DNA from: Octopus bimaculoides
Lineage: Eukaryota
DNA: 64,000 nucleotides
Assembly (NCBI RefSeq): GCF_001194135.2
Contig: NC_068995.1
Coordinates: 44,426,585 to 44,490,584, forward strand
Direction of reading: 5' to 3'
The position numbers were made by a program, and so were the translations under genes. Positions 20,981-55,059 of this stretch are shown piece by piece (the stretch's first letter is position 1; each line of letters starts with the position of its first letter). The notes under the pieces were generated by a model. It did no database searches, was not told where the DNA came from, and saw only the letters and a list, made by a program, of their open reading frames with translations.

Positions 20981-21022
20981 GGCTTTGATTCCAGTAACAT
21001 TTTTTTTCTTTTGTTTTGCCAG

Positions 21023-21166
21023 AGTTTTTTAGGTTTTGGCCAGAGTGCTGAGATTGACATTGTATTAGATGGCCAAGAGAGCAGAAAAACTGCTGAAATT
21101 AAAACTGAAGAAGGCAAAAAAGAGAGACATTTTCTCTACTTTGATGGTGAAACAGTATCCGGCAAG
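21023..21166 (+). CDS. VPS26: VPS26 coding exon 2 (SFLGFGQ...TVSGK)
   Basis: ttttgccag| and AAG|gtgagt; 144 nt, phase 0/0. Confidence 0.95.
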
Positions 21167-24100
21167 GTGAGTTTTTATTGTTTAGCTGTCTTTTCTAAGA
21201 CATCTATTTGCTTTATTGTCATTTTTTTTATTGTTCTCATAATTTGAGCATTATTTTACTATTCAAACTTTATTGTTTTAAAGTAATTGTTTCTAATTTA
21301 GGTACAATTTAAATATAGATGTTTATTATTCTGTCTTGCAATAACGAGATCGTGTTTTACAAACTGTTATTTTTATTTAATATAAATTCTATGGTAACCA
21401 TCATCATCATCATCATAGCGGACGTTAAACGATGATGACGATGATGATGATGATGGTCACCATAGAATTTATATTAAATAAAAATAACAGTTTGTAAAAC
21501 ACGATCTCGTTATTGCAAGACAGAATAATAAACAGCATGTATTTAGAGCTTTCTGTGTATATATATATAAAAAAAAAGAAACCCCAGTCTTATTGTAAAC
21601 TTGTTACATAAAGACAGCAGCTGAGATTGTGATAAATCAAATATCCAAATAGCTAGACACCTGTGTCACAGCAACCATTATTGACTAAAGTATGCCTTTC
21701 ACTACAGAGCACTAAGACATCAACACCTTGTCAGCTATAACCCTGTTTGCCTCTGTACCAATTCAACATTTGTTATCCCAGAATGGGAATAGTGGATTAC
21801 AGATATTGATATTGTTTTACACTGTTTATACTTTGACAGGGTTATTTGATTACTAATTAAGGTGTTCCTTGAATAGTTAACTTACAGAATTATTATTGAG
21901 ACAGCAGGAGTTCAGATACTAGCATTACTCAATTAAGAAAATTATCCTTGATACTCTTTTACTTGTTTCAGTCATTTGACTGTGGCCATGCTGGAGCACC
22001 ACCTTTAGTCGAGCAAATCGATCCCAGGACTTATTCTTTGTAAGCCTAGTACTTATTCTATCGGTCTCTTTTGCCGAACCACTAAGTTACTGGGATGTAA
22101 ACACACCAGCATCGGTTGTCAAGCGATGTTGTGGGGACAAACGCAGACACACAAACACATACACACACATACATACATATNNNNNNNNNNNNNNNNNNNN
22201 NNNNNNNNNNNNNNNNNNNNNNNNNNNNNNNNNNNNNNNNNNNNNNNNNNNNNNNNNNNNNNNNNNNNNNNNNNNNNNNNNNNNNNNNATATATATACAT
22301 ATATACGACGGGCTTCTTTCAGTTTCCGTCTACCAAATCCACTCACAAGGCTTTGGTCGGCCCGAGGCTATAGTAGAAGACACTTGCCCAAAGTGCCACG
22401 CAGTGGGACTGAACCCGGAACCATGTGGTTGGTAAGCAAGCTACTTACCACACAGCCACGGATTACCTATTCATGGTAATCCAGGATTTGCTAGTGAATG
22501 CTTTAACTCTTTTGTTACTATATTTCTGTTGGAACATACTGTCTTTCATAATCATCATTTAACATCTACTTTTCCATGTTTGCATGGATCAGATAGCATT
22601 TTGATAGATTTGGGGCAGATGCCCTTCTTGTTGCCAACTCTCACCTGTTTCCAGGTAAAGTAATATTTTGCCAAGACTAAAAACAAACACTGCTTGTATG
22701 ATGGTGATGCTCAATTACAGTCATTACACGGTGTCAAGACAAGGGTGCGCACACACCCATACAGAGCTTCTTTCAGTTTTCATCTCCCAAATCCACTCAC
22801 AAGGCTTTGGTTGGCCTGAAGCTATGGCAGATGACACTTGTCCAAGATATCTTACAGAGGGAGTGAACTCAAAACCACATAGTTGGGAGGCAAGCTTCTT
22901 AATCACACAGCTATGCTTGTGTCTTTGTTTCAAAAAATGTACCAAAATTTGAAATCATTATTTGGTTAATTGGTACTGGTTGATTTCTTTGTTACAGAGC
23001 TGGCAGATTTAATAGTATCTGTTGGAACAAGTGTTTTCACCATCTGTAATATTCTTTATCTGAATAACATTGTACAATGACTTACATGAGGGTATCATCT
23101 TTATGTTACTGTGTGTTAATTACATTTACAATTTTACTTTGTTTGTAGAAGTATTGTTTTCTGCTATTTCTGTTTTAATAGATTCTCTTTTAATTCTCAC
23201 TTTTTTCTGTATTAGGTGAATGTCACCTTGAAAAAGAGTGGCAATAAATTGGAACACCAAGGTATTAAAATAGAATTTATTGGACAAATTGGTACGTAAT
23301 TCTTTTAAGGATTTTTACAATATCTACTAAAATAGTTTTTCTCATATCATTTTCAATTTGTTTAATCAACAATTTCTCTATGGTTCTGCTGTTAAAATGC
23401 TTTAAATAAAACAACCACTAACAGCAGTCATGTTATATGCAAAATTTCTCAGGCTGGTGAGTTTGATACTGTTAATGTTCTCTGGAGAAGATAAATGAAA
23501 ACTATATTGTACAACTTAGCTGAAAGGTTCTATTAGACATGGCCAAAAAGCTTTACTAATGACAAATCTAATCACATTGCTTTCACTGAGTTGTGTGATG
23601 TAGGACAACTTCAAGAAACCTCATTCTACAGAAACAGGAGTGGTGGTCACTGAGGTGGGAAAGAAGAAGAGGTTTTGTCTTCATCCCATTTATAATGTTT
23701 GAAATGAGTGATAGATGTGTGTGTTGCATTGGTAGTCATCGAGGTGAGTAAAGTTGTGCTTCATGGAAACACTTTTGTATGGATCTAAGACTGATCAATC
23801 TAGCAAAGATAGGCACTAACTGTTGATGTCCATGAATGGAAGAGACATTATCAAAACCAATTTCCATTTTGGGTTGAAGCAAACAAAATCATTGCAAACT
23901 AATAGAAACCTTTTTGATAAAAGATCAGAAGGTTTTGGTAGTAAGTTTGGAAATAATTTAGAGGCTGAGGAGAGGATAAGTGCTTTTGAAATGCTTGTTT
24001 TAGAAGTATGGTGGTGGTGGTGGTGGTGGGGAGTTCTTCCTGGTGTTGTCAGCAGTATTGTTGTCATTTTGTCCTGCAGAGTAAACCGCCATGGTGGTTT

Positions 24101-27100
24101 AGTAGCTGTGGTTAGTTGTATGAGATATATGTGGAGGAACGTAAGTCAGAAGATAGTATTCATCTCTGACAGCTGTGACAGGTTAGCTATAGACGAACAT
24201 TTGTTGCCAGGGGGAGTCAGTGGTGTAAAAGTAGCAGATAATTGACCAGCGGAGAGATTATGTGCTTTTGGGGTTAGGGGAGGTGAGGAGATTAACAACT
24301 GTCGATAGTTTAAGATGGTGGTAGTGAGGGGTTTACAGGAACCAAGATGTATTGATTAAATTCATTAAACACACACGTCATTTAATTAACATGTGGTGGT
24401 GGTTGTGGCTGGAGAAGCTTGGTAAGTAGAGGTAGATGAACTTAAAACCAGAGTAAGTGGATGTCTTTGTTGTTGAGATTCTGGTGACAAAAATTGATGG
24501 TAGGGAATGTGAAGGCACCACCTTTGAGTGAAGTTGAATTAAAGAGTGTTTCCTGGACAGTGGAGTTAGTAATATGGGATGAGAATGTTATCATCCGACA
24601 AATTTTTGTTGACGTTGTTGTTTTAATTTTATTGTTGATAATATAACACAAGTCCAACACCATCCAACTGTTACAAGTTATTTTCCACTAATTTTTTCAG
24701 TCATTGTTTATTCAGTTACGAGAGTTTGTTTACCATAGACACCAAGCCCATGCTTAATTCATCATGATGGTAAATTATTTCACCTCTTGATAGAAATATT
24801 AATAAAAGAGTAAAGATTAATTGAATCTAAGATTGTAAAGCTAACTTTATCACCACGTACGGTAAAGTGGTAAATATTTTGCAGTGTTGTTTGATGATGT
24901 TATCTCAGATAGATAAAGAAGTCAGTAATTGAGATAATACAAGAGTGAAAAGACAGTGAAATTTATTTAATAAGCAGTTTTTTTAGGTGATTGTTAAAAA
25001 TATATGCAACACTAGATTAGATTGTTAAACTAGCTGCTGCTTGTTTTTAAAGCCAGGTAGAGGGGAATGAATAAGTTGGTAGTTCTGGATGGATCTTGTG
25101 TGAAATGTCCTTGAGGCTGGATAAGGGTAAATACGCAAGTTGATGCATTTTAGCAGAAAACTTATCTTTCGACAGATATAGTTAAATCTGTAATAATTAC
25201 TACTTCATGCCTGATTTGAAACCTATTAATTCATTAATTAAACTATTTCAGAGTTGTATTATGACCGTGGCAATCACCATGAATTTACGTCACTTGTCAA
25301 GGAATTGGCTCGACCAGGTATCCTAACCCAAAGTACCAGCTACAATTTTGAGTTTTTACAAGTTGAGAAGCCATATGAATCTTATACTGGTGTCAATGTT
25401 AGGTTGAGGTATGTACACTCTCTCTTTCTGTCTGTCTCTCTTTTTAGTCTTGTCAAGGGTTTGGTAATCCTATCTGGTGACAGTGCCACAATAAAATACA
25501 TCTGGTATTTAAAGTGTTGGGTTGTGGTGACCCTTCAGTTTTGTCGAAGACACGACGACTCTGGCGGTGATGCCATGATATAATGCACCTAGTGCACCCT
25601 GTACAGTGCTTGGTGTCAGAAAGGATGTCCAAACATTGAAACTTATTAATGAGATCATCATCATCGTCATCGTTTAACGTCCGCTTTCCATGCTAGCATG
25701 GGTTGGACGATTTGACTGAGGACTGGTGAAACCGGATGGCAACACCAGGCTCCAATCTGATTTGGCTGAGTTTCTACAGCTGGATGCCCTTCCTAACGCC
25801 AACCACTCTGAGAGTGTAGTGGGTGCTTTTACATGCCACCTGCACAGGAGCCAGTCCAGCGGTACTGGCAACGAACTCGCTCGAATGTCTTTTCATGTGC
25901 TAGGAAGGTGACATTGGTAACGGTCATGCTCAAATGGTGCTATTTACATGCCACTGGCACGAAAGCCAGACAGCTGGTGCTCTGGCAACGATCACGCTCG
26001 GACGCTGCTCTTAGTGATTTACTGGTACTGGTGCCATCACGATTTCGCTTTCGCTTGCCCCAACAGGTCTTGGTTGAGATGTGGTTCTGTTACCTGTCTA
26101 GGAGGATAGTGACAGCCTGTCCAACTCGTCAGCATGGAAAGCTGACATAAAATCGATGGTTCATGATGATGATAACAATACATATGATGAGCCTTTACCA
26201 GTTACACTTCACTGACTTTAGCAATACCATTCCATCTCTGCTTCTCTAATTTCCATTTATATTGTCATTGAACGCAAACATCGAAATAAAACTCAAGTTT
26301 TAATAGTGAACTTCGTCTTCCAAGAAATGACGATTTGTTCTTTTCTCTTTTTTCCTTCTGTTCATTTTAAATGAATTTGTTTGTTGATTTGTGCAGATAC
26401 TTTCTGCGTGTGACCATTGTGAAGAGAATCACAGATGTAGTGAAAGAACAAGACATCATTGTACATACACTCTCACAGTATCCTGATATGAACAACAGCA
26501 TCAAAATGGAAGTCGGCATTGAAGATTGCTTACATATAGAATTTGAATATAACAAATCCAAGTAAGTTTCTGCGGATGTCCCTATCTGTCTGTCTAGCTT
26601 GATTGCTATCTATCTGTCTGTCTAGCTTGATTGTTTTCTGTTTGTTTATCTAGCTGTCATGAGCAGCATTTCCAAACCAGAATTTCCTGGAGTCTTAGGG
26701 TTCTGTGAAGGATCACTTGTGACTCCATGATAAATAGTAATAAATATGCTAATTATATGCAAATGTCTTTTGGTGTAATTTTATATTTGTAATTTTATTA
26801 TCTCTGCATGTTCATATTCAAAATCTAGGCATCTGTTGAAGTAAGGAGACCTTACAGGAACAGTAACCTCTTAACAGGCAATTGGGGGGGAATTTAGTTT
26901 TAGACAAACATTCTTTGTGGCATCTGATGGATTTAACACAAAGAGAAAGGAAAAGATTACTAAAGATAGATTTTTCTATAGAGTTTCCTGAGATATGGAA
27001 TTTACTCAATAAAATAGCAGGGAATTACTGGTTTAGAGAGACACCTATCAGCCTAGCAGGATAATTACTTGTGAAATAAAACAAATTTATAGAGCAATGA

Positions 27101-30100
27101 GCCATCTTCAGTCTCCTTGATAAAAATCCAATTGTTGATACAACACAACATTATGACTACTATTATTGTAATAGTCATGAGATGCAGACATGGCTATGCA
27201 GTTAAAAAGTTTGCTTCCCAACCACATGGTTTCAAGTTCACAACCATCATGTGGTATCTTAAGCAAGTGTCTTCTATTATAGCCTCAGGTCAACCAAAGC
27301 CTTGTGAGTAGATTTGCTAACTGGAAACTGAAAGAAGTCCAAGTGATTGTTATAAACAAGTGTTGCTGTCAATCAAGCAATGACCTTCATTTCCAGTACT
27401 TTAAAAAAACATGTCTGGCCATGGGGAAATATTACCTTGCTTGGGAACAGATGAGGGTTGGCAACAGGCAGGGCATCAAGCCGTATAAACTCTGCCTCAA
27501 TAAACTTAGTCTAACAAAAGTAAGCATGGAAAAATGGACATTAAAATGATGATGATGATGATGAGTCATGTACAGGAGTAATATTTTCAACAATTAGTAA
27601 ATTTTGTTACTAAATTCTGGGCTTTAAAAAAGGAGATCAAATCTCGCTATTTTTCACATTAATCATCAGTGGAATATTAACTACAACTGGTTATTTCTGA
27701 CCGTAAAATGGAATGATTGCAAGAAATATGTCTACACTGTTTGTGTTTGCTTTCTAGGTATCATTTGAAAGATGTAATAGTGGGCAAAATATATTTCCTA
27801 CTTGTCCGAATAAAAATCAAACACATGGAAATACAAATCATTAAAAGAGAGACCACAGGAACTGGTGAGTATTTATCTAGTTGTTATTGCTTTTATGTAA
27901 CCCCAGGCCTGTCCTGATCCAGCAGATGTATGATCAAGGACATTCCAGGAGTGACCATTCCATCATTTTAATTTTATTTGTAAAGGCAATGAGCTGGCAG
28001 AATTGTTAGCATGCCAGGAAAATTGCTTAGTGGCATTTTGTCTGTCTTTATGATCTGACTTCAAATTCTGCTTTGCCTTTCATCCTTTTGGGGTCAATAA
28101 AATAAATACCAGATGATCACTGGGGTCGATGTAATCAACTTACTCCCTCTCCCGAAATTGCTGGCCTTGTGTCAAGATTTGAGATCAATTTTATTTATTA
28201 TGTTTAGAGTAACATTATCCAGTGAGATTTTTTTACCCTTAAGACACTAGTATGTAATTTGTGGGGAGATTTGGTTGCTATTTCTAGCAGATAGAGCAAC
28301 CACAGAAATTCCTTTTATCCTCATCAGTAATAAAATATAAATGGTGATGAGTCTTGTAGACGTAAACTCTTGAGTTTTATCCTTGACTCAGTTTCAACTC
28401 CTAGTATTAAACTTTTCAGTGTGCCTTTGGAGACTGACCCACTCATTTTAACTTCCATTGTTTGGGCAGGCATAGCTTTGTGGTTAAAACTTTTGCTTCA
28501 CAATCATGTATGGTCAATTATATCATGGGCGTGTGCTTTATAACCTTGCCTTGGGTCAATGCAATATTTGCAAATACTAACTGGATTAACAAACTGTGGG
28601 GAAACAATGTTGAATGGCCTTGAGTAGGACAGTTAATTTATGTGCCCTGTTGAACACCATTACCACCTGGTTCTTCAGTGATTCTGACAGGGTCCATTGT
28701 CTTACAAAGTGTTCAGATCAGTTTTCTGGTCACAGGGTAACAAGACATCATCATATGCTACTTCCCATTGCAATAACAATTCATGTATTTTGGTTTCTTG
28801 CTTCTTTGACTAGTCTCGATGATATCAATCACTCGCTGTCTTGGAGGGTCTCTAAAAGTCTTCCTCTTAAGTAAAAGATACTTGCCCAGGGTGTTACATA
28901 GTGGGGCTGAACCCTAAATCTTGTCTTGCCCACCAGACACCACATGATATAGATAGGTTTGAAACATCCCCTCTATCGTCCTTGGTGAGGTAGTTATGGG
29001 GTTTTTTTCTTGGTAATTTAATCTTTTATCCTTTTAATATTTTTTCTTTCTTTTCTTCCTGTAAAAATGTTAATAAAATGATAATAATAAAAACGATAGT
29101 TTTTCTGTTTGACCCATAAGATGTGATGATATTTGTTCTACTTTCCAGGTCCCAATGTTTACAATGAGAATGAAACAATTGCAAAATATGAGATCATGGA
29201 TGGGGCACCTGTCCGAGGTATGATTAGTTTCATCAATGTTTTTTGCTGAATATCTGTTAAATATAATATGTTAGTAGACTCATGAATAAAAGTTGATAAT
29301 TATTGGTCTCTTAAATAAAATATCAATAGTTATTGATTCTTTTAAATATCTAATTATTAATCTCATAAATATATATAATTATTGATCTCATAAATAATAT
29401 CTATAATTATTGATCTCATGATTACATATTGATCCCTTAAATATAATATCAATTTGTTGACCTCTTGAGTAAAATATCAATAATTATTGGTTTCTTAAAT
29501 AAAACATAAAAAAATTATTGATCTCTTAAATAAAAACATCAATAATTATTGGTCCCTTGAATAAAACATAAATAATTATTGATCTCTTGAATAAAACATT
29601 AGTAATTATTGATCTCTTGAATAAATGTCTACAATTATTGGTTTTATGAATATCTATAATTTTTTTTTATCTATGAATTGAATCTGTTTAATATCTTCAG
29701 TTATTGACTTGATTAGATGTATCATTTGAATAATGCTTTATATTGATTAGAAATATCAAAGCTAATTAAGAGAGAGAATGTGAGTAGTTGTACATTCAAT
29801 CAAATATTGAGCAATTTCTGATGAAAGGTTACAACTTACTATTTGATGAGATATTTATTATGGGGTTTCATAGAGCAGTAGTACTTTTGGTAAGGTTCCT
29901 TCCAAAACTCTCACATTTGCTTTAATGAACTGTCTGTATGCGATAGTGCACCACCTCCTGGTCAATGACAATTGGCAGGCTGGCCAAACTAGGTTGAAAC
30001 TGACTAATGAGTGCCAATGACTTTATAAAATCTCTGTAAAATTCTGTAAGGGTTTGTCACCGTGCACACATGAACACTGGAAGTTGTAGTGTAGACAAGG

Positions 30101-33100
30101 GTAGTTGCAGTTACCCACCTGACCCTGTCCTCTGCTAGTGATACTCTTTAAGGTGTCAATGTTCAAAAGGCAGAGGTCTTTGTCAAGACAAAGTGTATTT
30201 GTTATCAATTTTGTTCATAGAATGATTGATTTTCTATGCTTGTATGGATTATTGTTGTTGGCACTCCGTCGCTTACGACGTTGAGAGTTCCAGTTGATCC
30301 GATCAACGGAACAGCCTGCTCGTGAAATTAACGTGCAAGTGGCTGAGCACTCCACAGACACGTGTACCCTTAACGTAGTTCTCGGGGATATTCAGCGTGA
30401 CATAGCGTGTGACAAAGCTGACCATTTTAATTACAGGCACAACAGAAACATGAAGTAAGAGCGAGAGAAAGTTGTGGTGAAAGAGTACAGCAGGGTTCGC
30501 CACCATCCCCTGCCAGAGCCTCGTGAAGCTTTAGGTGTTTTCGCTCAATAAACACCCACAACACCCGGTCTGGGAATCGAAACCGCGATCCTATGACCAC
30601 GAGTCCGCTGCCCTAACCACTGGGCCATTGCGCCTCCACTTGTATGGATTAGATGAAGACTTATTTCAGGCAAGATTTTATGGCCAGATACCCTTCCTGT
30701 CATCAACGTTTTGCCTTTCTTACAAGTAAAGAATTTTTTATTTCACAGTTCTTCAAAAAGAACAACCAACCATAACATTGACAAGGAATGCAAACATCAA
30801 TTCACTGTTTTACTCTGGCTGTAACAAGCAAAACTGTGAAATATCAGCATTCAAGCACATTCACATGCTCACACACACACTGCTATATATATATATATAT
30901 CATCATCATTGTTTAACGTCCGCTTTCCATGCTAGCATGGGTTGGACGATTTGACTGAGGACTGGTGAAACCGGATGGCTACACCAGGCTCCAATCTGAT
31001 TTTGCAGAGTTTCTACAGCTGGATGCCCTTCCTAACGCCAACCACTCTGAGAGTGTAGTGGGTGCTTTTATGTGCCACCCGCACGAGGGCAAGTAGGGCG
31101 ATACTGGCAACGGCCATGCTCAAAATGGTGTATTTTCTGTGCCACCTGCACAAGAGCCAGTCCAGGGTCACTGGCAACGATCTCGCTCGAAAGTCCATTA
31201 CACATACTACTCACAACATTGGTAAACCCAAGACAATTGCTCAAGGTGTTGTACAGTAGGACTCAGATGTAAAAAGAATAAGGCTGTGATTATTTCAAAT
31301 AATATAAAATGGAAGTATAACTATTTTTGAAGAAACCAGCCCTTTCCTCTCTCTAATACAAGAGGTATCAGGCTGATAGATCAACTTGACAAACTTGTGA
31401 AGTTTAATATAAACATTGTTAGAATATTCGTGGCTTTGTTTATATTTTCTTAACACTTTTCTTTGTTATTGTCCTGAATAGGTGAGTCTATACCAATTCG
31501 ACTGTTCCTAAGTGGATATGATTTAACACCAACTATGAGAGACATCAACAAAAAGTTTTCTGTCCGTTATCACCTTAATTTGGTTTTAGTTGACGAGGAA
31601 GAACGCCGTTATTTCAAACAACAGGTAACTTTTAATTTCTCCTAATTTTGCACTCGCTCTCTTTCAGAACTCTGACAAGAGCAGAGACATTGCCTTTGAC
31701 AATTCCTCAAAAGCATTGGTAACTCATGTATTCTCTCTCCCACGCTCACACAGTTTTGGAGCTAGTAAAAACATGATAGTAGTAGATAACAGGACTTGAT
31801 TCTTTGCAGTATCTAATACTCATTGTCCTCAACTCAAATCTCTTAAGTCTTTGCGGTTTTTAGTTTGAATGGGGTGAAGAAGAGATTGATGTCTGCAGGA
31901 GAAAACATAATCAACAAGATGTTTTAGAGCAGGGGTTTTCAAACTGTGGTCCGCGGACCACAGGGGGTCCGCAAGGACAAGACAGTGGGTCCGTAGACAG
32001 CAAATACTTTTTATGAGCAATTTGATTTTATATATGTTTTTTAATTGAAATCTTTTAATTGACAATAAACCTATTTGTTAAATACTGCTAAATAAATAAA
32101 TGTAAAAATATATGTTATTTTAAGCAAATATTTATGTATAAATTTCATAAGCGTTTATAACGGGGTCCCCAAGGTAAAGCCTGAAATATAAAGNNNNNNN
32201 NNNGCAGGGGTTTTCAAACTGTGGTCCGCGGACCACAGGGGGTCCGCAAGGACAAGACAGTGGGTCCGTAGACAGCAAATACTTTTTATGAGCAATTTGA
32301 TTTTATATATGTTTTTTAATTGAAATCTTTTAATTGACAATAAACCTATTTGTTAAATACTGCTAAATAAATAAATGTAAAAATATATGTTATTTTAAGC
32401 AAATATTTATGTATAAATTTCATAAGCGTTTATAACGGGGTCCCCAAGGTAAAGCCTGAAATATAAAGGGGTCCACAAGTCAAAAAGTTTGAAAACCCCT
32501 GTTTTAGAGGACTGCAGTTCTAAGGGAAACTTGAGTATTTTATGAACAATAGACCCAGTAATGAGGACACAAAAATAAAAAAACTGATTTGATAGGTAGG
32601 ACTCTGTAGTAGGTATAGGGTAAATTCAAAAGACCTGAGAAATGAGACTGTTTTACTGTTGTATCTATTTGCTTGTTGTAATGTTTTGGTAAATGGGTCT
32701 TTGCTAACCAGTCAACTGGCTTTATTTTGATTGTGTGTGCAGCATTCTTCTATATATGTAAGCACTACTTCAGTTTAACTATTCCCTTTAGTTTTGTTGA
32801 GAAATCCCAGTCTCTGGGATATAGTTTGGTAATATTTTGCTCCACTTAAATGTGGATGTTCTGTTAGAACAAACTATACTGCAGTAGATACCATGAGTAC
32901 AGTTTGTTCTAACAGAACATCTACATTTAAGTGGGAATATATATACTCTTTTACTCTTTTCAGTCATTTGACTGCGGCCATGCTGGAGCACCGCCTTTAG
33001 TCGAGCAAATCGACCCTGGGACTTATTCTTTGTAAGCCTAGTACTTATTCTATCGGTCTCTTTTGCCGAACCGTTAAGTGACAGGGACATAAACACACCA

Positions 33101-33559
33101 GCATTGGTTGTCAAGCAATGCTAGGGGGACAAACGCACACACACATATATACGACAGGCTTCTTTCAGTTTCCGTCTACCAAATCCACTCATAAGGCTTT
33201 GGTCGGCCCGAGGCTATAGTAGAAGACACTTGCCCAAGATGCTGCACAGTGGGACTGAACTCAGAACCATGTGGTTGGTAAGCAAGCTACTTACCACACA
33301 GCCACTCCTGCACCTATATATAGTTTTTGATAAGCTTTGGTATTGTTCTTATGTATGAGTTGAATCCATTTACTTATAGATGTTTTTTTTGTTTTTTTTT
33401 TTTTCCCCCCATCAGGAAATCACTATATTCCGGAAAGCTGACAAAGTACGTAAAAGCATCCAGGCCACATTGCAAGCGCAGCATGCTACAATGCAGAGAA
33501 TGACTTTTCGTCGGGAACAGGCTGAAGCTAATAAAGATAACAGTAGTGATGATCAGTAA
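21023..33559 (+). CDS. VPS26: Vacuolar protein sorting 26 (retromer subunit), coding exons 2-9; 335 aa if a single ATG exon is added
   Basis: Exons 21023-21166, 23216-23291, 25252-25408, 26397-26561, 27758-27864, 29149-29217, 31482-31624 and 33416-33559 join in frame with GT-AG introns. Hallmark peptides: [89 protein letters not shown]. Confidence 0.97.
21320..21534. repeat. 95-bp-arm inverted repeat with one mismatch and a 25-nt loop, in VPS26 intron 2
   Basis: 21320-21414 is the reverse complement of 21440-21534 except A21396/C21458. Confidence 0.95.
23216..23291 (+). CDS. VPS26: VPS26 coding exon 3 (VNVTLKK...FIGQI)
   Basis: attag| and G|gtacgt; 76 nt. Confidence 0.95.
25252..25408 (+). 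CDS. VPS26: VPS26 coding exon 4 (ELYYDRG...VNVRLR)
   Basis: tttcag| and AG|gtatgt; 157 nt. Confidence 0.95.
25663..26150 (-). mobile_element. SINE family A copy in VPS26 intron 4
   Basis: Matches the 7761 and 47491 copies. Confidence 0.85.
26397..26561 (+). CDS. VPS26: VPS26 coding exon 5 (YFLRVT...EYNKSK)
   Basis: gtgcag| and AA|gtaagt; 165 nt. Confidence 0.95.
27758..27864 (+). CDS. VPS26: VPS26 coding exon 6 (YHLKDV...ETTGT)
   Basis: ttctag| and G|gtgagt; 107 nt. Confidence 0.95.
29149..29217 (+). CDS. VPS26: VPS26 coding exon 7 (GPNVYNE...GAPVR)
   Basis: ttccag| and G|gtatga; 69 nt. Confidence 0.95.
29298..29660. repeat. Degenerate ~29-nt AT-rich minisatellite (taattattgatctcttaaataaaatatcaa) in VPS26 intron 7
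   Basis: About a dozen recognisable units. Confidence 0.8.
30253..30640 (-). mobile_element. Full-length tRNA-derived SINE (family C)
   Basis: Head ggaggcgcaatggcccagtggttagggcagcggactc...ggtttcgattccc and (CAA)n tail. Near-identical copies at 51952-52385(+) and 53178-53489(+). Confidence 0.9.
30899..31190 (-). mobile_element. SINE family A copy in VPS26 intron 7
   Basis: Matches the other family A copies. Confidence 0.85.
31482..31624 (+). CDS. VPS26: VPS26 coding exon 8 (GESIPIR...YFKQQ)
   Basis: gaatag| and CAG|gtaact; 143 nt. Confidence 0.95.
31930..32501. mobile_element. hAT-type MITE (~300 bp; appears doubled by an assembly overlap at the 10-N gap)
   Basis: Perfect 15-bp TIRs caggggttttcaaac / gtttgaaaacccctg and 8-bp TSD ttttagag (31922-31929, 32502-32509). 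Confidence 0.92.
33416..33559 (+). CDS. VPS26: VPS26 coding exon 9 (EITIFRK...SSDDQ*)
   Basis: Long polypyrimidine tract then catcag|; TAA at 33557-33559. Confidence 0.92.
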   Translation, partial: EITIFRKADKVRKSIQATLQAQHATMQRMTFRREQAEANKDNSSDDQ

Positions 33560-47013: not shown

Positions 47014-47077
47014 ATGGACATCAGACCAAACCACACAATTTATATTAACAATTTGAATGAAAGTATTAAGAAAGATG
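47014..47077 (+). CDS. SNRPA: U1A/SNF coding exon (MDIRPNH...IKKD)
   Basis: ATG at 47014; G|gtaagt. Confidence 0.95.
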
Positions 47078-50000
47078 GTAAGTCGACTAGCTTTGCTTTG
47101 GAATTTAGTGAAGTATCATTCAGATGGTAACAGATTAACAAGGACCTAAAGACAAACTAGATTTCTTTTACAGGTCCAATAATTTGGGTGGTGATTAGAA
47201 GTTCCCATTATGTAATAACATTCCAGTATGTGGATTACTACAACTCTTGAAGTGTATTTAATGTAAGAACCTGGAATTTTGGGTTTCATAAATTCTTTTG
47301 GAGCCCCATCACATCTTCACTTTCTTTTGCTCACTCCAACTGAGTAGCCCCATATCTCCTCTACTGCAAGACCTTTATTTCTGTCCCTCTTCATACTATT
47401 AACCTCATCGCCTGGCACAAAGCCATCTCCTTCAATACTGCTACCCAAGAAGTTTTGCAAGTAACTTGGTGATGTCACTGCTGCCAATGCCATCATCATC
47501 ATCGTTGTTTAACGTCCGCTTTCCATGCTAGCATGGGTTGGACGATTTGACTGAGGACTGGTAAAACCAGATGGCTACACCAGGCTGCAATCTGATTTGG
47601 CAGAGTTTCTACAGCTGGGTGCCCTTCCTAACGCCAACCACTCCGAGAGTGTAGTGGGTGCTTTTACATGCCACCGGCATGAAGGCCAGTCAGGCGGTAC
47701 TGGCAACGGCCATGCTCAAAGTGGTGTATTTTACGTGCCACCTGCACAGGAGCCAGGAAGGCGATGCTGGGCACAGGTGCCATGACGGTTTCGCTTTCGC
47801 TTGCCCCACGTTTCCAATGAAGGAGACGACGTTGGCATGGGTGCCATGTAAAATGCATTCAGTACACTGTAAAGTGGTTGGCATCATGAAGAACGTCCAA
47901 CTGTAGAAAGTGTATGCTAAAACAGGTAGTAGAGATTGGTACAAGTTTTCTCACTTGCCTACTCCTGTCTCACTGCCCAACCCATGCCAGCATGGAAGGG
48001 AAGACATTGGATAATAATGATTCTACATTACGTTGCTTTGTCATGTTTGTTAGCCTTAATTTACTTCTGCTAACTCTTGATCTACATCCAATCTTTTCTA
48101 TTCTCCAATATATTTTTATATTTCTATAATTCTCTGATTGTACTCTGTATTTTTTTTTTTTCAGAACTAAAGAAATCTTTATATGCAATTTTCTCACAAT
48201 TTGGCCAAATTCTTGACATTGTTGCCTTAAAAACTTTGAAATGTCGAGGACAAGCTTTTGTAATTTTTAAAGACATCAACAGTGCCACAAATGCTCTCCG
48301 GTCAATGCAAGGCTTCCCGTTCTATGACAAACCAATGGTAAGATCAACATTTCATGTCTTCTTAATGTGTGTTTGTGTCTTTCTTACATGTGGCTAGATT
48401 TTATCAATTCTTAATCATCATTAATGCCTGGTTCTTTAAGCTTGCATGGGTCAGGTAGATTTTATGCAGCCAGATACCCCTTCCTGTTGCCAATCCTCCC
48501 CTGTTCCTAAGCAAAGTAATATTTCACCATGGAGGACAGTATATGAACAACATGGCTCATATGACAGTGATACTCATTTGCAATCATCATAGGATGTCTA
48601 CCCAAGGGGTACACACACACACGACAGCTTCTTTCAGTTTCTATGTACCAAATCTATCCACAAGGCCTTGGTCAGCCTGGGACTCTAATAGAAGACATCT
48701 TATGACCACTTATGTTTGGGAAACAAGCTTTTCAACCACACAGCCATGTCTGTACCTTCAACATGTACATATAAACGAGGTAGTGAGCTAGCAGAATTGT
48801 TAACATGTCAGATGAAATACTTAACAGCATTTCATTCATCTTTATGTTTTGAGTTCAATTTCCACCAATGTCGACTTTGCTTTTCATCCTTTAGGGGTTG
48901 ATATAATCAGCTTATGCCCCTCCCCTGAAATTACTGGCCCTGTGCCAAGTTTTGAAATCAATATACACATATAGAATTACACTGTCTGGTCAAAATCTTT
49001 GTTTTGCCTTTCTTTATGAAATCCTTAATATACAGGATTTGTCCTCTTTTTAATTCTTTTGATACCAAAAGAACTTGATGATACCCCAACTTCTATTTAA
49101 AAGGATCTGAATTAAAACCATTCCACAATCATTTATTTTCCAACTATCAGCTTAAGAATGGTAAAGTTATTTCACTAAATTTGTATCTCTTTTCTAAATT
49201 AATTGAAATACATTCACTGTGTTTTTGCAAGAATATTCTGCTTCTAATCACACTATAGTTTGGTTTAGAATTTTGCTTTACAACCACATCTTTGGCGTTA
49301 GGAAGGGCATCCAGCTGTAGAAACTCTGTCAAATCAGACTGGAGCCTGGTGTTGCCATCCGGTTTCACCAGTCCTCAGTCAAATCGTCCAACCCATGCTA
49401 GCATGGAAAGCGGACGTTAAACGATGATGATGATGATGATGATGATGTTAGCAAAAGGGCTAAGGACCCTATTATGTAGCTTTAGTCTTGTCTTTTCAAA
49501 CTGGAATGTATCCTTGATTTTGTATTTTTACTTGAAAAATAATAATAAATGGCTAATGTTTTCATTTGTTTTACCAGAGAATACAGTATTCCAAGAAAGA
49601 TTCTGATATCATTGCGAAGATGAAAGGTACCTATACAGAAAGACCAAAAAAGAAAAAAGATGATGAGCCAGAAAATAAGAAACGCAAGAAGGGAGCTTCC
49701 CAACAGGCTGTTGCCGCTGCTGCTAAGTGAGTCGGGGTTGTTTATTTATTTATTTTTTTATGTTACACTTCTTCATATTATATCGTATCTTAAAGCGTCC
49801 AAAGATGGCTGACCTGTCTCTCCAGGGATAAGAAATACTTCCAGCTGTAAGCAATTGTTGAGTCTGTATAAAGACCCAAATTCGTCACATAGTTGTATGG
49901 TTAAGAATTTTGCTTCACAGCCACATGATTCCTGGTTCAATTCCATTGTGCAGTTCCAGGTTTTTTTGGGGTTTTTTACTGCTGTTAAAGCCCACAATAT

Positions 50001-53000
50001 AGATCAAGTAATAAACTATCAATGGAACCTCTTTATGAATGCTTGATCTGCTAAATGTAGCAAGCTATTCTGCTTCTAATCACACTATAGTTTGGTTAAG
50101 AATTTTGCTTTACAACCACATGGTTCCTGGTTCAATTCCATTGTGTAGTTTGTTTTTTGTACTGCTGTTATAGCTCACAGTATAAACCAAGTAATAACCC
50201 AACATAGAAACCTCTTAATGGTTCCTTGATCTACTAATAGTTTCAACCAATTCTGCTTCTAATCACACCTTGCAGTTTTAAAGAAAAAATCACATGGGAT
50301 TGTCATGGGTGGGACGCCTTTGATTTAAAGGGCCTGCTGGGTTAAGATTGACTTGGGCTTGAACAAAAATTGAAGTGAAGTTGTCAAATGTTTTGATTAA
50401 AAACAGCTTTTTATGTCTTTTTTTAATTTTTTTATTGATCTGATATTATAAGCTATGTTTATGTTCCAGGGCCCAGGCAGCTGGTGTAGTACCACCTCCT
50501 ATCCAACCCATTTCAGCAATGGCTGGTCAACCAGTTCCTCAACAACCTGTACTACAACAATTACAGCAGCCAGTTGTTCAAAGTAAGTGATTGTTTATCA
50601 TTCATACTGTATAATCATCATCATCATTATCAATACTTGGAACTCAGTGTCTTCATTCAAATGCTGTTGTGCTTCCATGAATAAGGAAGTGTTTCTGTGG
50701 TCATAGCTTTTAGTTTTTTCTCAAACTTCCATCTCGTTATTTTCCCCCGTTTTTATGACCTAAACTCTTTTCAAGTCTAAAGTAAATTCATTCCTTTCGT
50801 CTTAATTTCTCCGTCTTCATAGTCCCTTACATTGAGTGGCTTCTTGCCTTGTTTGGAATTTTCAATTAAAACAATAAAGGGACCATTGACCGAGTAATGG
50901 CTGTTGACCAGTGCTGGCAGGAGTGGACATCTCTTTGTGGTTAAGAAGCTTGCTTCCTAACCATTTGGTTTTGGACTCGGTCTCATTTTGTAACACCTTA
51001 GGCAAATATCTTCAACTAGACCCTTAGGAGCCTTGTGGATTTGGTAGGTAGAAACTGAAAGAAGCCTGGTATGTGTGTGTGTGTGTGTGTGTTTATATTC
51101 ATGTCTCAACACCCTGTGATGGTTGTAAGTGTGCATCACCATCATACAAGTGATGTCGTTTGCTTCCAGTCTTCCATGTCTGGTCATGGGGAAATATTAC
51201 CTTGCATGGAAACCAGTGAGGGTTGGTAACAAGAAGGGCATCCAACCATAAAAAAAAAATCTGGCTCAAGGAATTCACCCTGACCCATGCAAGCATGACA
51301 AAGTAGATGGAGGGGTGAGAGGATATTTCTAATGAGATTTTGTTTATTACATCTAAGACAAGATGGGGGTCCCACTGCACTGATTCATCTCAACAGTTTG
51401 AGCTTCAGTACAGGCTCCACTTCTGTTTTTTTTAACATTGGTATGACTTAAGATATTACTGCAGTCTGATATAGGAGGCCCATCGCCATTGGAAGTGTCT
51501 CAAAAGTAGTTTAAAAAAAAAAAAAGGGAATCATGAATCAGTAAGACAGTTCCTAATTGGTTGATCCATTATTTATTTGTGGCATAAGCAAATAGAAAAA
51601 TTGATTTAAACAATGTGAAGGCACATGGCTTAGTGGTTAGGGTGTTGGACTCCTGATTGTAAGATTGTGGTTTCAATTCCTGGACTGGGCATTGTGTTGT
51701 GTTTTTGAGCAAAACACTTCGTTCCTTGTTGCTCCTTTCCACTCAACTGGTAAAATCGAGTAGTCCTGTGATAGACCAGCACCCTGTCCACAGAGGAGTG
51801 TATACACCAGAAAAACCAGGAAACTGTCCCTATGCTCCTTACAGAGTAGTGTGGACTACCCAATATATTTCAACAGGAATATGGTAAATGGTTGGTCATG
51901 ACTAGAACATCTTTGGTCATGTCTGCTCATTCATAGTTAAGCTCAAGCCTGTGGAGGCGCAATGGTCCAGTGGTTAGGGCAGTGGACTCATGGTCATAGG
52001 ATCGTGCTTTCGATTCCCAGACCGGGCGTTGTGAGTGTTTATTGAGCGAAAACACCTAAAGCTCCACGAGGCTCCGGTAGGGGATGGTAGCCAACCCTGC
52101 TATACTCTTTCACCACAACTTTCTCTCACTCTCTCTTCCTGTTTCTGTTGTGCCTGTAATTCAAAGGGCCAGCCTTGTCGCGCTGAATATCCCCGAAAAC
52201 TACGTTAAGGGCACACATGTCTGTGGAGTGCTCAGCCACTTGCACGTTAATTTCACGAGCAGGCTGTTCTGTTGATCAGATCAACTNNNNNNNNNNGCAC
52301 GTTAATTTCACGAGCAGGCTGTTCTGTTGATCAGATCAACTGGAACCCTCGACGTCGTAAGCGGCGGAGTGCCAACAACAACAAGTTCAAGCCAAACAGC
52401 CACAACTTAGTCTGGTGGAAGTAAATGGAATATTTCAGTAGTTTCTACAAGAATCCCCCGTTATTGTTACTGTATTTGTCTTTATCTCTAAAGTCCCATG
52501 TAACTGTGTTTAGTAACTAATTCACCCCATTTTCTATTGCAGATTCTACAAATATGGCAGCGCCAAATACCATTCCAGAACAGCCTCCTAACCAAATTCT
52601 GTTCTTAACCAACCTTCCTGAGGAAACCACAGAAATGATGTTGTCAATGTTGTTCAATCAGTAAGTCTTAGTTTCACATTGGAAGCATTTGACTTGTGTA
52701 TTTATGACAAGAGATCACCAGATTGGATAATGGACAGGCAATTAGATTTAATTAGTTGTTCATGTCCTGTTATTGCTCTGGAAATGGCACTTAACTGTCA
52801 ACAATCCAGTCCACTTAGTTGTAGCTCTGTGTCCTATGACAAGAGGTAGGTGAGGGTCACTGGATTGGATAATAGATGGACGACTAGATTAGTTGTTCAT
52901 GTTCTGTTATTTCCGTAGAAATGGCACTTAACTGTCAACAGTCCAGTCCACTTAGCTGTTAGCGGGTACCAGTGGAGTGTAACTGTACTGTATTTATGAC

Positions 53001-53889
53001 TGTAATGTCATCAACCCAATGAACTTTACTATAAGTAAATACCACAGTATGGTATACTTTACAATACTGTGTCAATGACCAAGATTGACACAGCTAAATG
53101 CACTGTCCAGAGTCCACCTAGCTGTAAATAGTTACCACAGTGTGGTGTAGCTCATTGCACTGTATGTATGACCAAGAAGTGGAAGCGCAATGGCCTAGTG
53201 GTTAGGGCAGCGGACTCGCGGTTTCGATTCCCAGACTGGGCGTTGTGAGTGTTTATTGAGCGAAAACACCTAAAGCTCTACAAGGCTCTGGCAGGGGATG
53301 GTGGCGAACCCTGCTGTACTCTTTCACCACAACTTTCTCTTACACACTGTGTCGCGCTGAATATCCCCAAGAACTACGTTAAGGGTACACGTGCCTGTGA
53401 AGTGCTCAGCCACTTGCACATTAATTTCACGGGCTGGCTGTTCCAGTTGATCGGATCAACTGGAACCCTCGACGGAGTGCCAACAACAAATGACCAAGAC
53501 ACTTAACTGTTGACAGCTCAGTCTGTGCTACTGTAAGTAGGTACTACTGTGGCATCAATGTGAAATTAGCAAGTGTTTTGTGGCTTACCAAACCATGCTT
53601 TTTTTTTTTTTTTTAGAATTTTATTTATTTATTTATTTATTTTACTGAAGGAAATCTATCAGAAATACACCAGTAGCTATGTCATCTAGTGATTTTTTTA
53701 TGGATTTTTTTTTTCCTTTCTCCTTTTAGATTTCCTGGTTTCAAAGAGGTCCGTTTGGTGCCTGGTCGGCATGATATTGCATTTGTTGAATTTGAAAATG
53801 AAATGCAAGCTGGTGCGGCAAAGGATGCACTTCAAGGCTTCAAGATTACACCAAACAATGCAATGAAAATCACATTTGCTAAGAAGTAG
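47014..53889 (+). CDS. SNRPA: U1A/U2B''/SNF-family snRNP protein (two RRMs, 258 aa)
   Basis: Exons 47014-47077, 48165-48337, 49578-49726, 50470-50582, 52543-52660 and 53730-53889 total 777 nt in frame. RRM1: [46 protein letters not shown]2: [47 protein letters not shown]. Confidence 0.97.
47491..47760 (-). mobile_element. SINE family A copy (antisense) in U1A intron 2
   Basis: Matches family A. Confidence 0.9.
48165..48337 (+). CDS. SNRPA: U1A/SNF coding exon (ELKKSLY...YDKPM), RRM1 core
   Basis: tttcag| and ATG|gtaaga; 173 nt. Confidence 0.96.
49292..49447 (+). mobile_element. 5'-truncated SINE family A copy (sense) in U1A intron 3
   Basis: ttggcgttaggaagggcatcc...gcggacgttaaacg(atg)n. 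Confidence 0.9.
49578..49726 (+). CDS. SNRPA: U1A/SNF coding exon ([18 protein letters not shown]...AAAA)
   Basis: taccag| and AA|gtgagt; 149 nt. Confidence 0.95.
50470..50582 (+). CDS. SNRPA: U1A/SNF coding exon (Pro/Gln-rich linker)
   Basis: ttccag| and A|gtaagt; 113 nt; phases fit the neighbouring exons. Confidence 0.9.
51952..52385 (+). mobile_element. tRNA-derived SINE family C in U1A intron 5
   Basis: Reverse complement of 30253-30640. Confidence 0.9.
52543..52660 (+). CDS. SNRPA: U1A/SNF coding exon (...[14 protein letters not shown]...LFNQ)
   Basis: ttgcag| and CA|gtaagt; 118 nt. Confidence 0.95.
53178..53489 (+). mobile_element. tRNA-derived SINE family C with TSD
   Basis: Flanked by the 10-bp direct repeat atgaccaaga (53168-53177, 53490-53499). 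Confidence 0.9.
53730..53889 (+). CDS. SNRPA: U1A/SNF last coding exon (FPGFKEV...TFAKK*)
   Basis: ttttag|; TAG at 53887-53889. Confidence 0.96.
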
Positions 53890-54013
53890 GACAAGAAAGA
53901 AGACAGTAAAAATATGATGAAAGAAATTTGGTGCATTTCAGTAAAACTTACAAAATAAACCATCAAATTCTGCACAACTTTGCTGCCAGATGGAATGGTA
54001 AGCAGCATCAATG

Positions 54014-54041
54014 CCATCGTCATTGCACCATCCGACGGTGG
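54014..54041 (+). promoter_or_regulatory. U1 snRNA SLII-mimic hairpin (predicted U1A/SNF binding site) in the U1A/SNF 3'UTR
   Basis: CCAUCGUC [AUUGCAC CAUCC] GACGGUGG: 8-bp stem with one G-U pair and a C-G closing pair. Confidence 0.8.
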
Positions 54042-54234
54042 ATTCTCATTTTACATTCTTCATTTTGGTGGGTGAGGGGGGGTGAAGTTAATTCGCAGTA
54101 TTCTTACCAAAACTCATTGACAGATTTCTTCCTTTCTTTCACCATTTCATAGTTTTTGTTTGTTCGTTTTTTTTTTTCCAACTGAGATATTTGTTTACTT
54201 TTCTTTTATATTGAAATACAAATTAGAGAATAAC

Positions 54235-54240
54235 AATAAA
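54235..54240 (+). terminator. SNRPA: Distal polyadenylation signal of U1A/SNF (a proximal AATAAA is at 53954-53959)
   Basis: AATAAA followed by U/GU-rich downstream sequence. Confidence 0.65.
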
Positions 54241-55059
54241 ATGACAAATTCTCTCTTAAAAACACTGGGAAAATTTTGTTTCTATTTAATGTGATCTTGT
54301 TTGTTTTTATAATTATCAATGTTCTTAATGAGCTTGATGTAGCCAGTAGTATATATCGGTGGGTACCAGAAATCTGTTGAAGTCCCACCAAAGATTTGGT
54401 CTTTCTCTGTAATATAACGAAAGAGGAGACATATTGCCTGAATGAATCCCTGCATTGAATGCTAAGTGAATCATTTAATGTTCTCCTTCCATGCTGGCAT
54501 GGATTGGACAGTTTGATGAGAGCTGGCAAGCCAGTAGACTGTGTAATGCTCTACTGTCTGTTTTGGCATAGTTTCTATGGCTGGATGTCCTTCCTAAAAC
54601 TAACCATTTTACAGAGTGTACTGGGTGCATTTTCTTGTAGTACCAGTGAGGCCAGCAAGTAACTTGCAAGACTTGACTCCTTAGCTAAGTAGGGGTTCTA
54701 GTATTGGAGGAGGTGACTTTGTGCGAGGTGATGAGTATGATAGAGAGACAGAAACAGGTGTCTTGTTGTAGGAGTCTACCCTCATGTTTCAGGGAGGTGT
54801 ATAAAAGTGAAGTGGTTTAAGCGATTGGATAAGGTGAGCAAGAGAAAGGAAAGTGGGAGATGGTGGGGAAGAGGTATGCAGTGAGTGAATACAGGTGGAG
54901 GGAAGGGGGTGTTAGGAACATACATTTTGGGAGTGGGAGAGGGGCATGCAGTGAATGGTGAACGCAGGTGGAATAAGCGGGTGTTAGGAAGATGAGTTGT
55001 TGGGGATAGATTGTGTACAGGTGCATTGGCATACCTTTAGGGCCTCAATTTTACTTGGA

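Follow-up and report, generated by a model that had tools for sequence, protein, structure and literature searches.

Why should the gene for U1A, itself a protein of the U1 small nuclear ribonucleoprotein (snRNP), carry a consensus 5' splice site beyond its own stop codon, next to a hairpin that resembles the RNA target of U1A? The question arises in a 64-kb stretch of Octopus bimaculoides DNA (the window; AT-rich eukaryotic DNA with N-gaps), the plus strand of which carries a U1A/SNF (SNRPA-type) gene of six coding exons (47014-53889). In the 3' untranslated region (3'UTR) of this gene, the 5' splice site AUG|GUAAGC (53995-54003, plus strand; hereafter the donor), a predicted U1 snRNP-binding site, stands just upstream of a U1A-type hairpin (54014-54041, plus strand). 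Together these elements span 53995-54041, between the stop codon ending at 53889 and an AATAAA at 54235. An initial annotation of the sequence had offered two readings: that the donor opens a 155-nt intron enclosing the hairpin, the splicing of which would expose the mRNA to nonsense-mediated decay (NMD), or that it is a site at which U1 snRNP acts. We found the donor to be a real, conserved and splice-competent 5' splice site. The 155-nt intron appears unlikely, and we favor the U1-site reading, in which the arrangement of donor and hairpin probably serves as a switch for self-regulation.

The donor and the hairpin in the U1A 3'UTR

The coding exons of the U1A gene (47014-47077, 48165-48337, 49578-49726, 50470-50582, 52543-52660 and 53730-53889, plus strand) were located by tblastn using a human U1A sequence, which served as a probe only. 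Joined, they gave exactly the translation of O. bimaculoides XP_014783260.1 (P0124), with the stop codon TAG at 53887-53889. The donor was found where the initial annotation had placed it, with the exon ending at 53997 and the GT at 53998-53999, and the stop-to-junction distance of 108 nt given there was borne out. The site offers six contiguous base pairs to U1 (positions -1 to +5), i.e. it is a contiguous canonical 5' splice site and not a bipartite one. With a simple metazoan position weight matrix, whose frequencies were taken from general knowledge, it scored 9.0-9.75 depending on the background frequencies used. This matches the gene's own donors at exon 1 (ATG|GTAAGT) and exon 2 (ATG|GTAAGA). 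An equal or higher score was reached by 46 GT sites on both strands of the window, 28 of them on the plus strand.

The 3'UTR was compared with the genome loci of O. sinensis (L001), O. vulgaris (L014), Argonauta hians (L012) and Sepia pharaonis (L013), which were obtained by protein search and exact-sequence look-ups. The initial annotation had suggested checking conservation of the donor and acceptor in other cephalopods, and for the donor such conservation was found: the 9-mer AATGGTAAG, GUAAG included, was invariant in all five coleoid species (O. bimaculoides, O. sinensis, O. vulgaris, A. hians and Sepia). In the five-species 3'UTR alignment, no blocks other than AATGGTAAG and the hairpin block CCATCGTCATTGCACC..C.GA.G.TGG were invariant across octopods and decapods. 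The donor lay 12-17 nt upstream of the hairpin in every species compared (5/5), and the spacer between the two differed in both sequence and length (GCAGCATCAATG, GCTGCATTAAAAG and GGAAGGCA). An invariant donor beside a varying spacer argues that the donor is under purifying selection of its own, and it has been kept just upstream of the hairpin since octopods and decapods diverged.

The hairpin begins 16 nt after the donor G, as had also been claimed, and reads CCATCGTC / ATTGCACCATCC / GACGGTGG. Its 8-bp stem (54014-54021 paired with 54034-54041) carries the AUUGCAC-type loop AUUGCACCAUCC (54022-54033), closed by a C-G pair as in stem-loop II of U1 snRNA, and the fold energy is -11.4 kcal/mol. 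In Sepia, the pairing of the stem is retained via two one-sided changes (U.G to U-A and G-C to G.U). Octopods have one copy of the hairpin, and decapods have two separate copies. The hairpin mimics U1 stem-loop II, U1A's own RNA target, and is presumed to bind U1A. A scan of 53700-54500 against Rfam (E <= 10) gave zero matches to the region of interest and only two chance matches to long non-coding RNAs, both upstream.

Use of the donor in cuttlefish and octopus transcripts

The transcript set consisted of 12 Logan RNA-seq contigs of cuttlefish type (L002-L011, L015 and L016) that encode the decapod U1A protein or its C-terminal part. Eight of them (L002 and L005-L011) were unspliced from the stop codon through the donor and two AUUGCAC hairpins, and L005 extended through AATAAA/ATTAAA into a poly(A) tail ~200 nt past its second hairpin. 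The other four, from four SRA runs (L003, L004, L015 and L016), were spliced exactly at the donor: they read ...AAAAAGAATG|ATGGCTGACACAAGC..., where the genome has ...GAATG|GTAAGG. L004 was 100% identical to the S. pharaonis genome exons, while L003, L015 and L016 were 98-99% identical and bore a diverged copy of L004's downstream exon. The same junction is therefore present in at least two species and is no assembly chimera. A junction between the donor and the near acceptor of the proposed 155-nt intron was found in none of the 12 contigs. Thus, the unspliced polyadenylated mRNA is the common form, and splicing from the donor reaches a distal exon, which was not found within 10 kb downstream of U1A in S. 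pharaonis.

No counterpart of this Sepia distal exon was found in the window or in the O. sinensis, O. vulgaris and Argonauta loci. The exon (L004 901-1356; also in L015 and L016) begins exactly at an ATG that starts a 151-aa open reading frame (ORF), which had no Pfam match and is degenerate in the second Sepia-type species; we take its 'GRP' helix-turn-helix look to be an impression only. The exon may represent the opening coding exon of a gene that lies downstream and possibly derives from a transposon. L015 (1-330) and L016 (1-244) also retain at least 244-330 nt of the intron before the penultimate coding exon: either the 3'UTR donor was spliced before the removal of that intron or the 5' ends of these RNAs lie within it.

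The O. vulgaris annotation contains a U1A-LRRC49 fusion protein of 1090 aa, CAI9733970.1 (P0122). Its junction peptide FAKK-WNE-MVAFV-LKCYFYISK can be obtained in just one way, by joining four pieces of the O. vulgaris locus in the order AAGAA + ATGGAATG + AAATGGTCGCCTTCG + TTTTGAAATG... The first piece, AAGAA, is followed by a donor GTAAGA that overlaps the stop codon; the second is the 8-nt ATGGAATG, which ends at the conserved donor; the third is a 15-nt exon that has a good acceptor and lies 11,566 nt downstream; and the fourth is an extended LRRC49 exon. The joining was computed through ...MVAF, and the last LRRC49 join was checked by hand. In the window, ATGGAATG corresponds to the last 8 nt before the donor (53990-53997, plus strand), which the P0122 peptide makes a micro-exon after an acceptor CCAG|. 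Every donor junction seen, in cuttlefish contigs and in this model, pairs with an exon more than 10 kb downstream.

The O. vulgaris model also implies a 104-nt intron (window 53886-53989; L014 13416-13519). The donor of this intron overlaps the stop codon; it reads AAGAA|GTAAGA in both O. vulgaris and O. sinensis and has the weaker form GTAGGA in the window. Between the acceptor of the intron, CCAG|, and the conserved donor only 8 nt remain, which form the micro-exon. This intron could be real or could be an annotation device that keeps the frame open. The O. vulgaris annotation combined Iso-Seq and RNA-seq data (StringTie, PASA), protein alignments and ab initio models through EVM (PMC10700109).

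Further searches were made for octopus transcripts. A search with the exact O. sinensis U1A protein found matches in genome assemblies only, one with the C-terminal 104 aa of octopus U1A returned arthropod and vertebrate fragments and none from octopus, and one with the fusion-junction peptide gave no independent fusion ORF. Matches of the type '...FAKKW...' were rejected as evidence of splicing, being translations that read TGA as W, and so was P0257, an unspliced Sepia UTR with TAG read as Q. The U1A-LRRC49 'fusion' models of octopus annotations probably stem from read-through RNA spliced at the donor and not from real fusion genes.

Competing explanations for a splice site past the stop codon

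We give an even chance to a mechanism in which the U1 snRNP site and the U1A hairpin hold down use of the gene's own poly(A) site, with the read-through RNA being spliced into downstream genes. U1 snRNP would bind GUAAG at 53998 and U1A protein would bind the hairpin. The main mRNA would keep both elements and be polyadenylated ~200-250 nt further downstream, where donor-bound U1 snRNP and hairpin-bound free U1A would jointly repress cleavage and polyadenylation. An abundance of U1 snRNP or of free U1A would then lower U1A output, which would amount to negative feedback. Transcripts left unterminated would read through, and the donor would be joined to the first usable acceptor of a downstream gene, >10 kb away. 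Such splicing would remove the hairpin and yield chimeric RNAs, which in Octopus would be eligible for NMD. Read-through splicing from the donor would explain both the Sepia isoform with the distal exon and the octopus U1A-LRRC49 model.

Several points weigh against this mechanism. To our knowledge, no invertebrate U1A has been assayed for binding or for polyadenylation. The human polyadenylation inhibition element (PIE) lies ~20 nt from its poly(A) signal and needs two U1A molecules, whereas Octopus has a single hairpin ~194 nt from AATAAA, and in Argonauta the distance is greater still. Since unspliced, donor-bearing mRNA dominates the assemblies, any repression would be partial. The Sepia junction lies only 25 nt after the stop codon, so the spliced isoform may be a stable mRNA with an alternative 3'UTR and not waste. 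As for octopus, the O. vulgaris fusion isoform comes from an annotation that pooled several kinds of evidence, its 8-nt and 15-nt micro-exons could be annotation artefacts, and no RNA contig from any Octopus species was recovered in the Logan searches.

A switch between alternative terminal exons, as in immunoglobulin M (IgM), seems to us an unlikely but credible explanation. Here the donor would compete with the proximal poly(A) site and both 3' ends would be functional; U1A would either block assembly of U1 or the spliceosome sterically from 12-17 nt away, for which the hairpin is near enough to the donor, or block the poly(A) site. The outcome would be a hairpin-bearing mRNA and a hairpin-free mRNA with the distal end, differing in stability or translation. 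Cuttlefish do have both isoforms (8 unspliced and 4 spliced contigs), two species use the one distal exon despite its divergence, and this exon bears an AATAAA near the end of contigs L015 and L016. With its junction 25 nt past the stop codon, the Sepia isoform would also escape NMD that depends on the exon junction complex (EJC). However, the distal partners differ between lineages: in Sepia the donor is joined to an exon with a helix-turn-helix-like ORF, in Octopus to a 15-nt exon followed by LRRC49. Such a pattern has the look of opportunistic read-through splicing and not of a conserved alternative exon. The spliced product in Octopus is moreover fused to another gene and eligible for NMD, and we found no evidence that the choice is regulated.

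The intron of the initial annotation (53998-54152) is improbable. Its splicing would create a junction 108 nt past the stop codon and lead to NMD, with hairpin-bound U1A setting the ratio of the two forms. Every consensus element is indeed present: the candidate branch point CTCATTGAC (54113-54121) and the pyrimidine tract TTTCTTCCTTTCTTTCACCATTTCATAG with its TAG (54125-54152) were found on the plus strand as described, the tract ending at 54152, yet as an acceptor this segment (54113-54152) is unsupported. When acceptors were defined as YAG after >=80% pyrimidines, 60 of equal or better quality were counted on both strands of the window, and a comparable one lay 60-300 nt downstream of 4 of the 28 plus-strand donors (14%) and of 4 of the 46 overall (9%). 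A short well-formed intron is thus expected by chance for about one in ten strong donors, and the pairing alone is no evidence.

The short NMD-coupled intron failed on two counts, namely conservation of its acceptor and presence of its junction in orthologous transcripts. Among the three Octopus species, identity was 98% over the donor and hairpin segment, 94% over the middle of the putative intron and 91% from the acceptor to the poly(A) signal. Over the pyrimidine tract and AG it was 71%, with a 6-nt indel, which makes the proposed acceptor tract the least conserved and fastest-evolving 3'UTR segment in Octopus (71% versus 91-98% for its neighbors). In Argonauta, another T-rich tract runs up to a CAG ~50 nt past the hairpin, a point in favor of the short-intron reading, while the Sepia counterpart ends in a poor AAG; MAFFT aligned neither tract with 54125-54152. 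The conservation expected of the acceptor in other cephalopods was thus not found.

As for the junction, an isoform sensitive to NMD would be under-represented in assemblies, and its absence there is weak evidence. Yet four cuttlefish-type contigs use the donor and none of the 12 uses the near acceptor, and in Sepia the junction would lie 25 nt past the stop codon, where NMD would not hide it. A working acceptor at 155 nt also normally beats one at 11 kb, and the O. vulgaris model has the distal junction; the gene's other introns are 743-1960 nt long. The claim that a junction at the donor lies far enough past the stop codon (more than 50-55 nt) to trigger NMD holds for Octopus (108 nt) and Argonauta (344 nt), in keeping with the short intron, and breaks down in Sepia (25 nt). 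EJC-dependent NMD would therefore not be the conserved reason for keeping the donor.

That the donor-like sequence has no function of its own, being a chance match or a part of a larger U1A-binding structure, is very hard to credit: sites of this score do occur at ~0.4 per kb per strand in the window and a weak stem could tie the donor to neighboring sequence, but the 9-mer is invariant across octopods and decapods where the adjacent spacer is not, and exact use of the donor in four contigs (at least two species), along with the annotated octopus model, largely refutes this view.

Neighboring elements, related genes and known systems

The AATAAA at 54235-54240 (plus strand), 194 nt after the hairpin and conserved in Octopus, probably serves the main unspliced mRNA as its poly(A) signal. 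The poly(A) site of Sepia corresponds to it: the tail of L005 follows AATAAA/ATTAAA at the matching place. Just before the AATAAA at 54235, Octopus has TTTATATTGAAATACAA (54205-54221), which matches TTTATATTAAAATACAA at the Sepia poly(A) cleavage site at 16 of 17 nt. Another AATAAA (53954-53959, plus strand), 39 nt upstream of the donor, occurs at that place in the three Octopus species and is absent there in Argonauta and Sepia; being restricted to the genus Octopus, it was rejected as a functional signal. Downstream of the hairpin, the G-rich stretch GGTGGGTGAGGGGGGGTGAAG (54067-54087, plus strand) contains a second donor-like site, TGG|GTGAGG, and a similar GGGTGAGGTGGGG occurs in the Sepia UTR. 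The two share a donor-like G-rich core, GGGTGAGG(N)GGGG, which in Sepia (L005 ~1115-1135) likewise lies downstream of the hairpins.

The initial annotation had also described the +5/+6 positions of the donor as paired in a 6-bp stem. Both halves of this stem (TGCTGC 53981-53986 and GCAGCA 54002-54007) are present, but it is no better than in shuffled sequences (z = -1.1). A G-to-A change in O. sinensis and O. vulgaris breaks the 6-bp register and fits instead the register GCUGCCA/UGGU-AAGC of the minimum free energy (MFE) fold, a possible weak stem of 9 bp with a bulge (53980-54005, plus strand) that pairs the donor side (53996-54005) with the upstream UUGCUGCCA (53980-53988). This bulged stem is also the MFE fold in Argonauta (z = -1.1 in the window and -1.7 in Argonauta), whereas Sepia would pair the donor with a different partner, and no compensatory change was seen in the stem. 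The 6-bp stem was rejected as a conserved mask of the donor, since its register is not conserved and it does not outperform shuffles, and a donor-pairing stem of either form is not established by these folds.

Beyond the 3'UTR, all coding exons of the neighboring Vps26 gene lie on the plus strand of the window (20981-33556), and of these the first is the most distant from U1A. The Argonauta Vps26 lies on the opposite strand and head-to-head with U1A, an arrangement also given by the gene calls at the other octopus, Sepia, chiton, Haliotis and Lingula loci. The orientation in the window may reflect a contig flipped between N-gaps or a true inversion.

We extended the comparison to the U1A loci of other lophotrochozoans: Pecten (L022), a chiton (L023), Haliotis (L024), Lingula (L025) and a group that are possibly bivalves (L017-L021 and L026-L028). 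Hairpins of the cagcATTGCACnnngctg type were present upstream of the poly(A) signal in every lophotrochozoan U1A 3'UTR examined. Three such motifs were found in Pecten maximus, three in Haliotis rubra, three to four in Lingula anatina, four to five in each of two species that are possibly bivalves (P0005/P0006), and ~15 in the chiton Liolophura, in a 50-nt tandem array. This array (L023 7170-7899) comprises 11.7 copies with a 50-nt period and 3.2 copies with a 42-nt period. No consistent strong donor was found upstream of the hairpins in the Pecten, chiton, Haliotis and Lingula 3'UTRs. In the P0005/P0006 pair of related species (L017 and L026), the block GATGGGAGCTGTGCAATGATATAAGCTGGGTAAGCTT, ~60-105 nt after the stop codon and upstream of the hairpin cluster, was perfectly conserved between diverging flanks; it combines TGG|GTAAGC with GTGCAAT, the reverse complement of the loop motif.

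With hairpins in all the lophotrochozoan 3'UTRs examined, binding sites for U1A on its own mRNA look ancient and neither cephalopod- nor vertebrate-specific. We tentatively raise, while doubting, the broader possibility that a U1 site with AUUGCAC loops is an ancient bilaterian homeostatic module common to vertebrates (U1 site and PIE) and lophotrochozoans, which cephalopods cut from an array to one or two hairpins and fused to a splice-competent donor, coupling failed polyadenylation to read-through splicing into the next gene. If so, the gene would monitor assembled U1 snRNP by way of the donor and free U1A by way of the hairpin. U1A autoregulation through the PIE is textbook feedback at the polyadenylation step and is treated as a vertebrate feature, and our searches of the literature turned up no account of a U1A autoregulatory element in any invertebrate. 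The cephalopod arrangement would extend the idea to invertebrates and tie it to a donor that is really used. It would offer a natural system for asking how free U1A and U1 snRNP work together on a single RNA, and could show whether suppression of a poly(A) site couples to read-through splicing into neighboring genes and whether the vertebrate U1 site and PIE are ancestral or convergent.

Autoregulation by NMD through 3'UTR introns or poison exons is known for SR proteins, SmB/B' and U1-70K. The cephalopod locus resembles these in having a splice in or near the 3'UTR of a splicing factor gene, with a junction >50 nt past the stop codon in Octopus. It differs in that the short intron is unsupported, the Sepia junction lies at 25 nt and the acceptors belong to other genes.

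A second parallel is the late 3'UTR of bovine papillomavirus 1 (BPV-1), together with U1 interference and U1 adaptors, where an unspliced consensus 5' splice site likewise stands upstream of a poly(A) signal (PMC2874999). Where U1 snRNP occupies a 5' splice site of a terminal exon, it inhibits poly(A) polymerase via U1-70K, and U1-70K and U1A bound upstream of AAUAAA both inhibit this enzyme (PMC2874999). In contrast to these cases, the cephalopod site belongs to a cellular gene for a U1 snRNP protein, is paired with a presumed binding site for that very protein, and is also a real donor on read-through RNA.

In the switch between secretory and membrane IgM, a 5' splice site competes with a poly(A) site, with U1A acting near the secretory site (Phillips & Gunderson 2003, 2004, via PMC2874999 and PMC3157836). 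The U1A gene of cephalopods shares with it a donor and a poly(A) site in one exon, U1A sites nearby and two mRNA 3' ends. The IgM switch changes the coding sequence and uses exons of the same gene, whereas the cephalopod donor lies in the 3'UTR and the downstream exons are those of neighboring genes.

A further close parallel is vertebrate SNRPA (U1A) itself, whose autoregulation through the PIE and a bipartite U1 site was reportedly described by Boelens in 1993 and by Gunderson in 1994 and 1997. According to PMC3157836, which cites Guan et al. 2007, the human U1A 3'UTR has a U1 site resembling a 5' splice site upstream of the PIE, and the two together repress the poly(A) site. As in human SNRPA, the octopus elements lie in the 3'UTR of the U1A gene itself, have AUUGCAC loops for U1A, and place a 5' splice site-like U1 site just upstream of the U1A site, with the poly(A) signal downstream of the two. 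In octopus, too, 3'-end formation would be under the negative feedback that the same literature ascribes to the human gene (PMC3157836, PMC2874999). The forms differ: the human PIE has two internal loops (AUUGCAC and AUUGUAC) in one stem and binds a U1A dimer, while the cephalopod hairpins have terminal loops and lie ~200 nt or more from the poly(A) signal. The human U1 site is bipartite, and that of octopus is a contiguous canonical 5' splice site, spliced to distal exons in orthologue transcripts. Although no member of the PIE RNA family is detectable, by analogy the cephalopod 3'UTR appears to follow the same logic as the vertebrate U1 site and PIE, in a simpler form.

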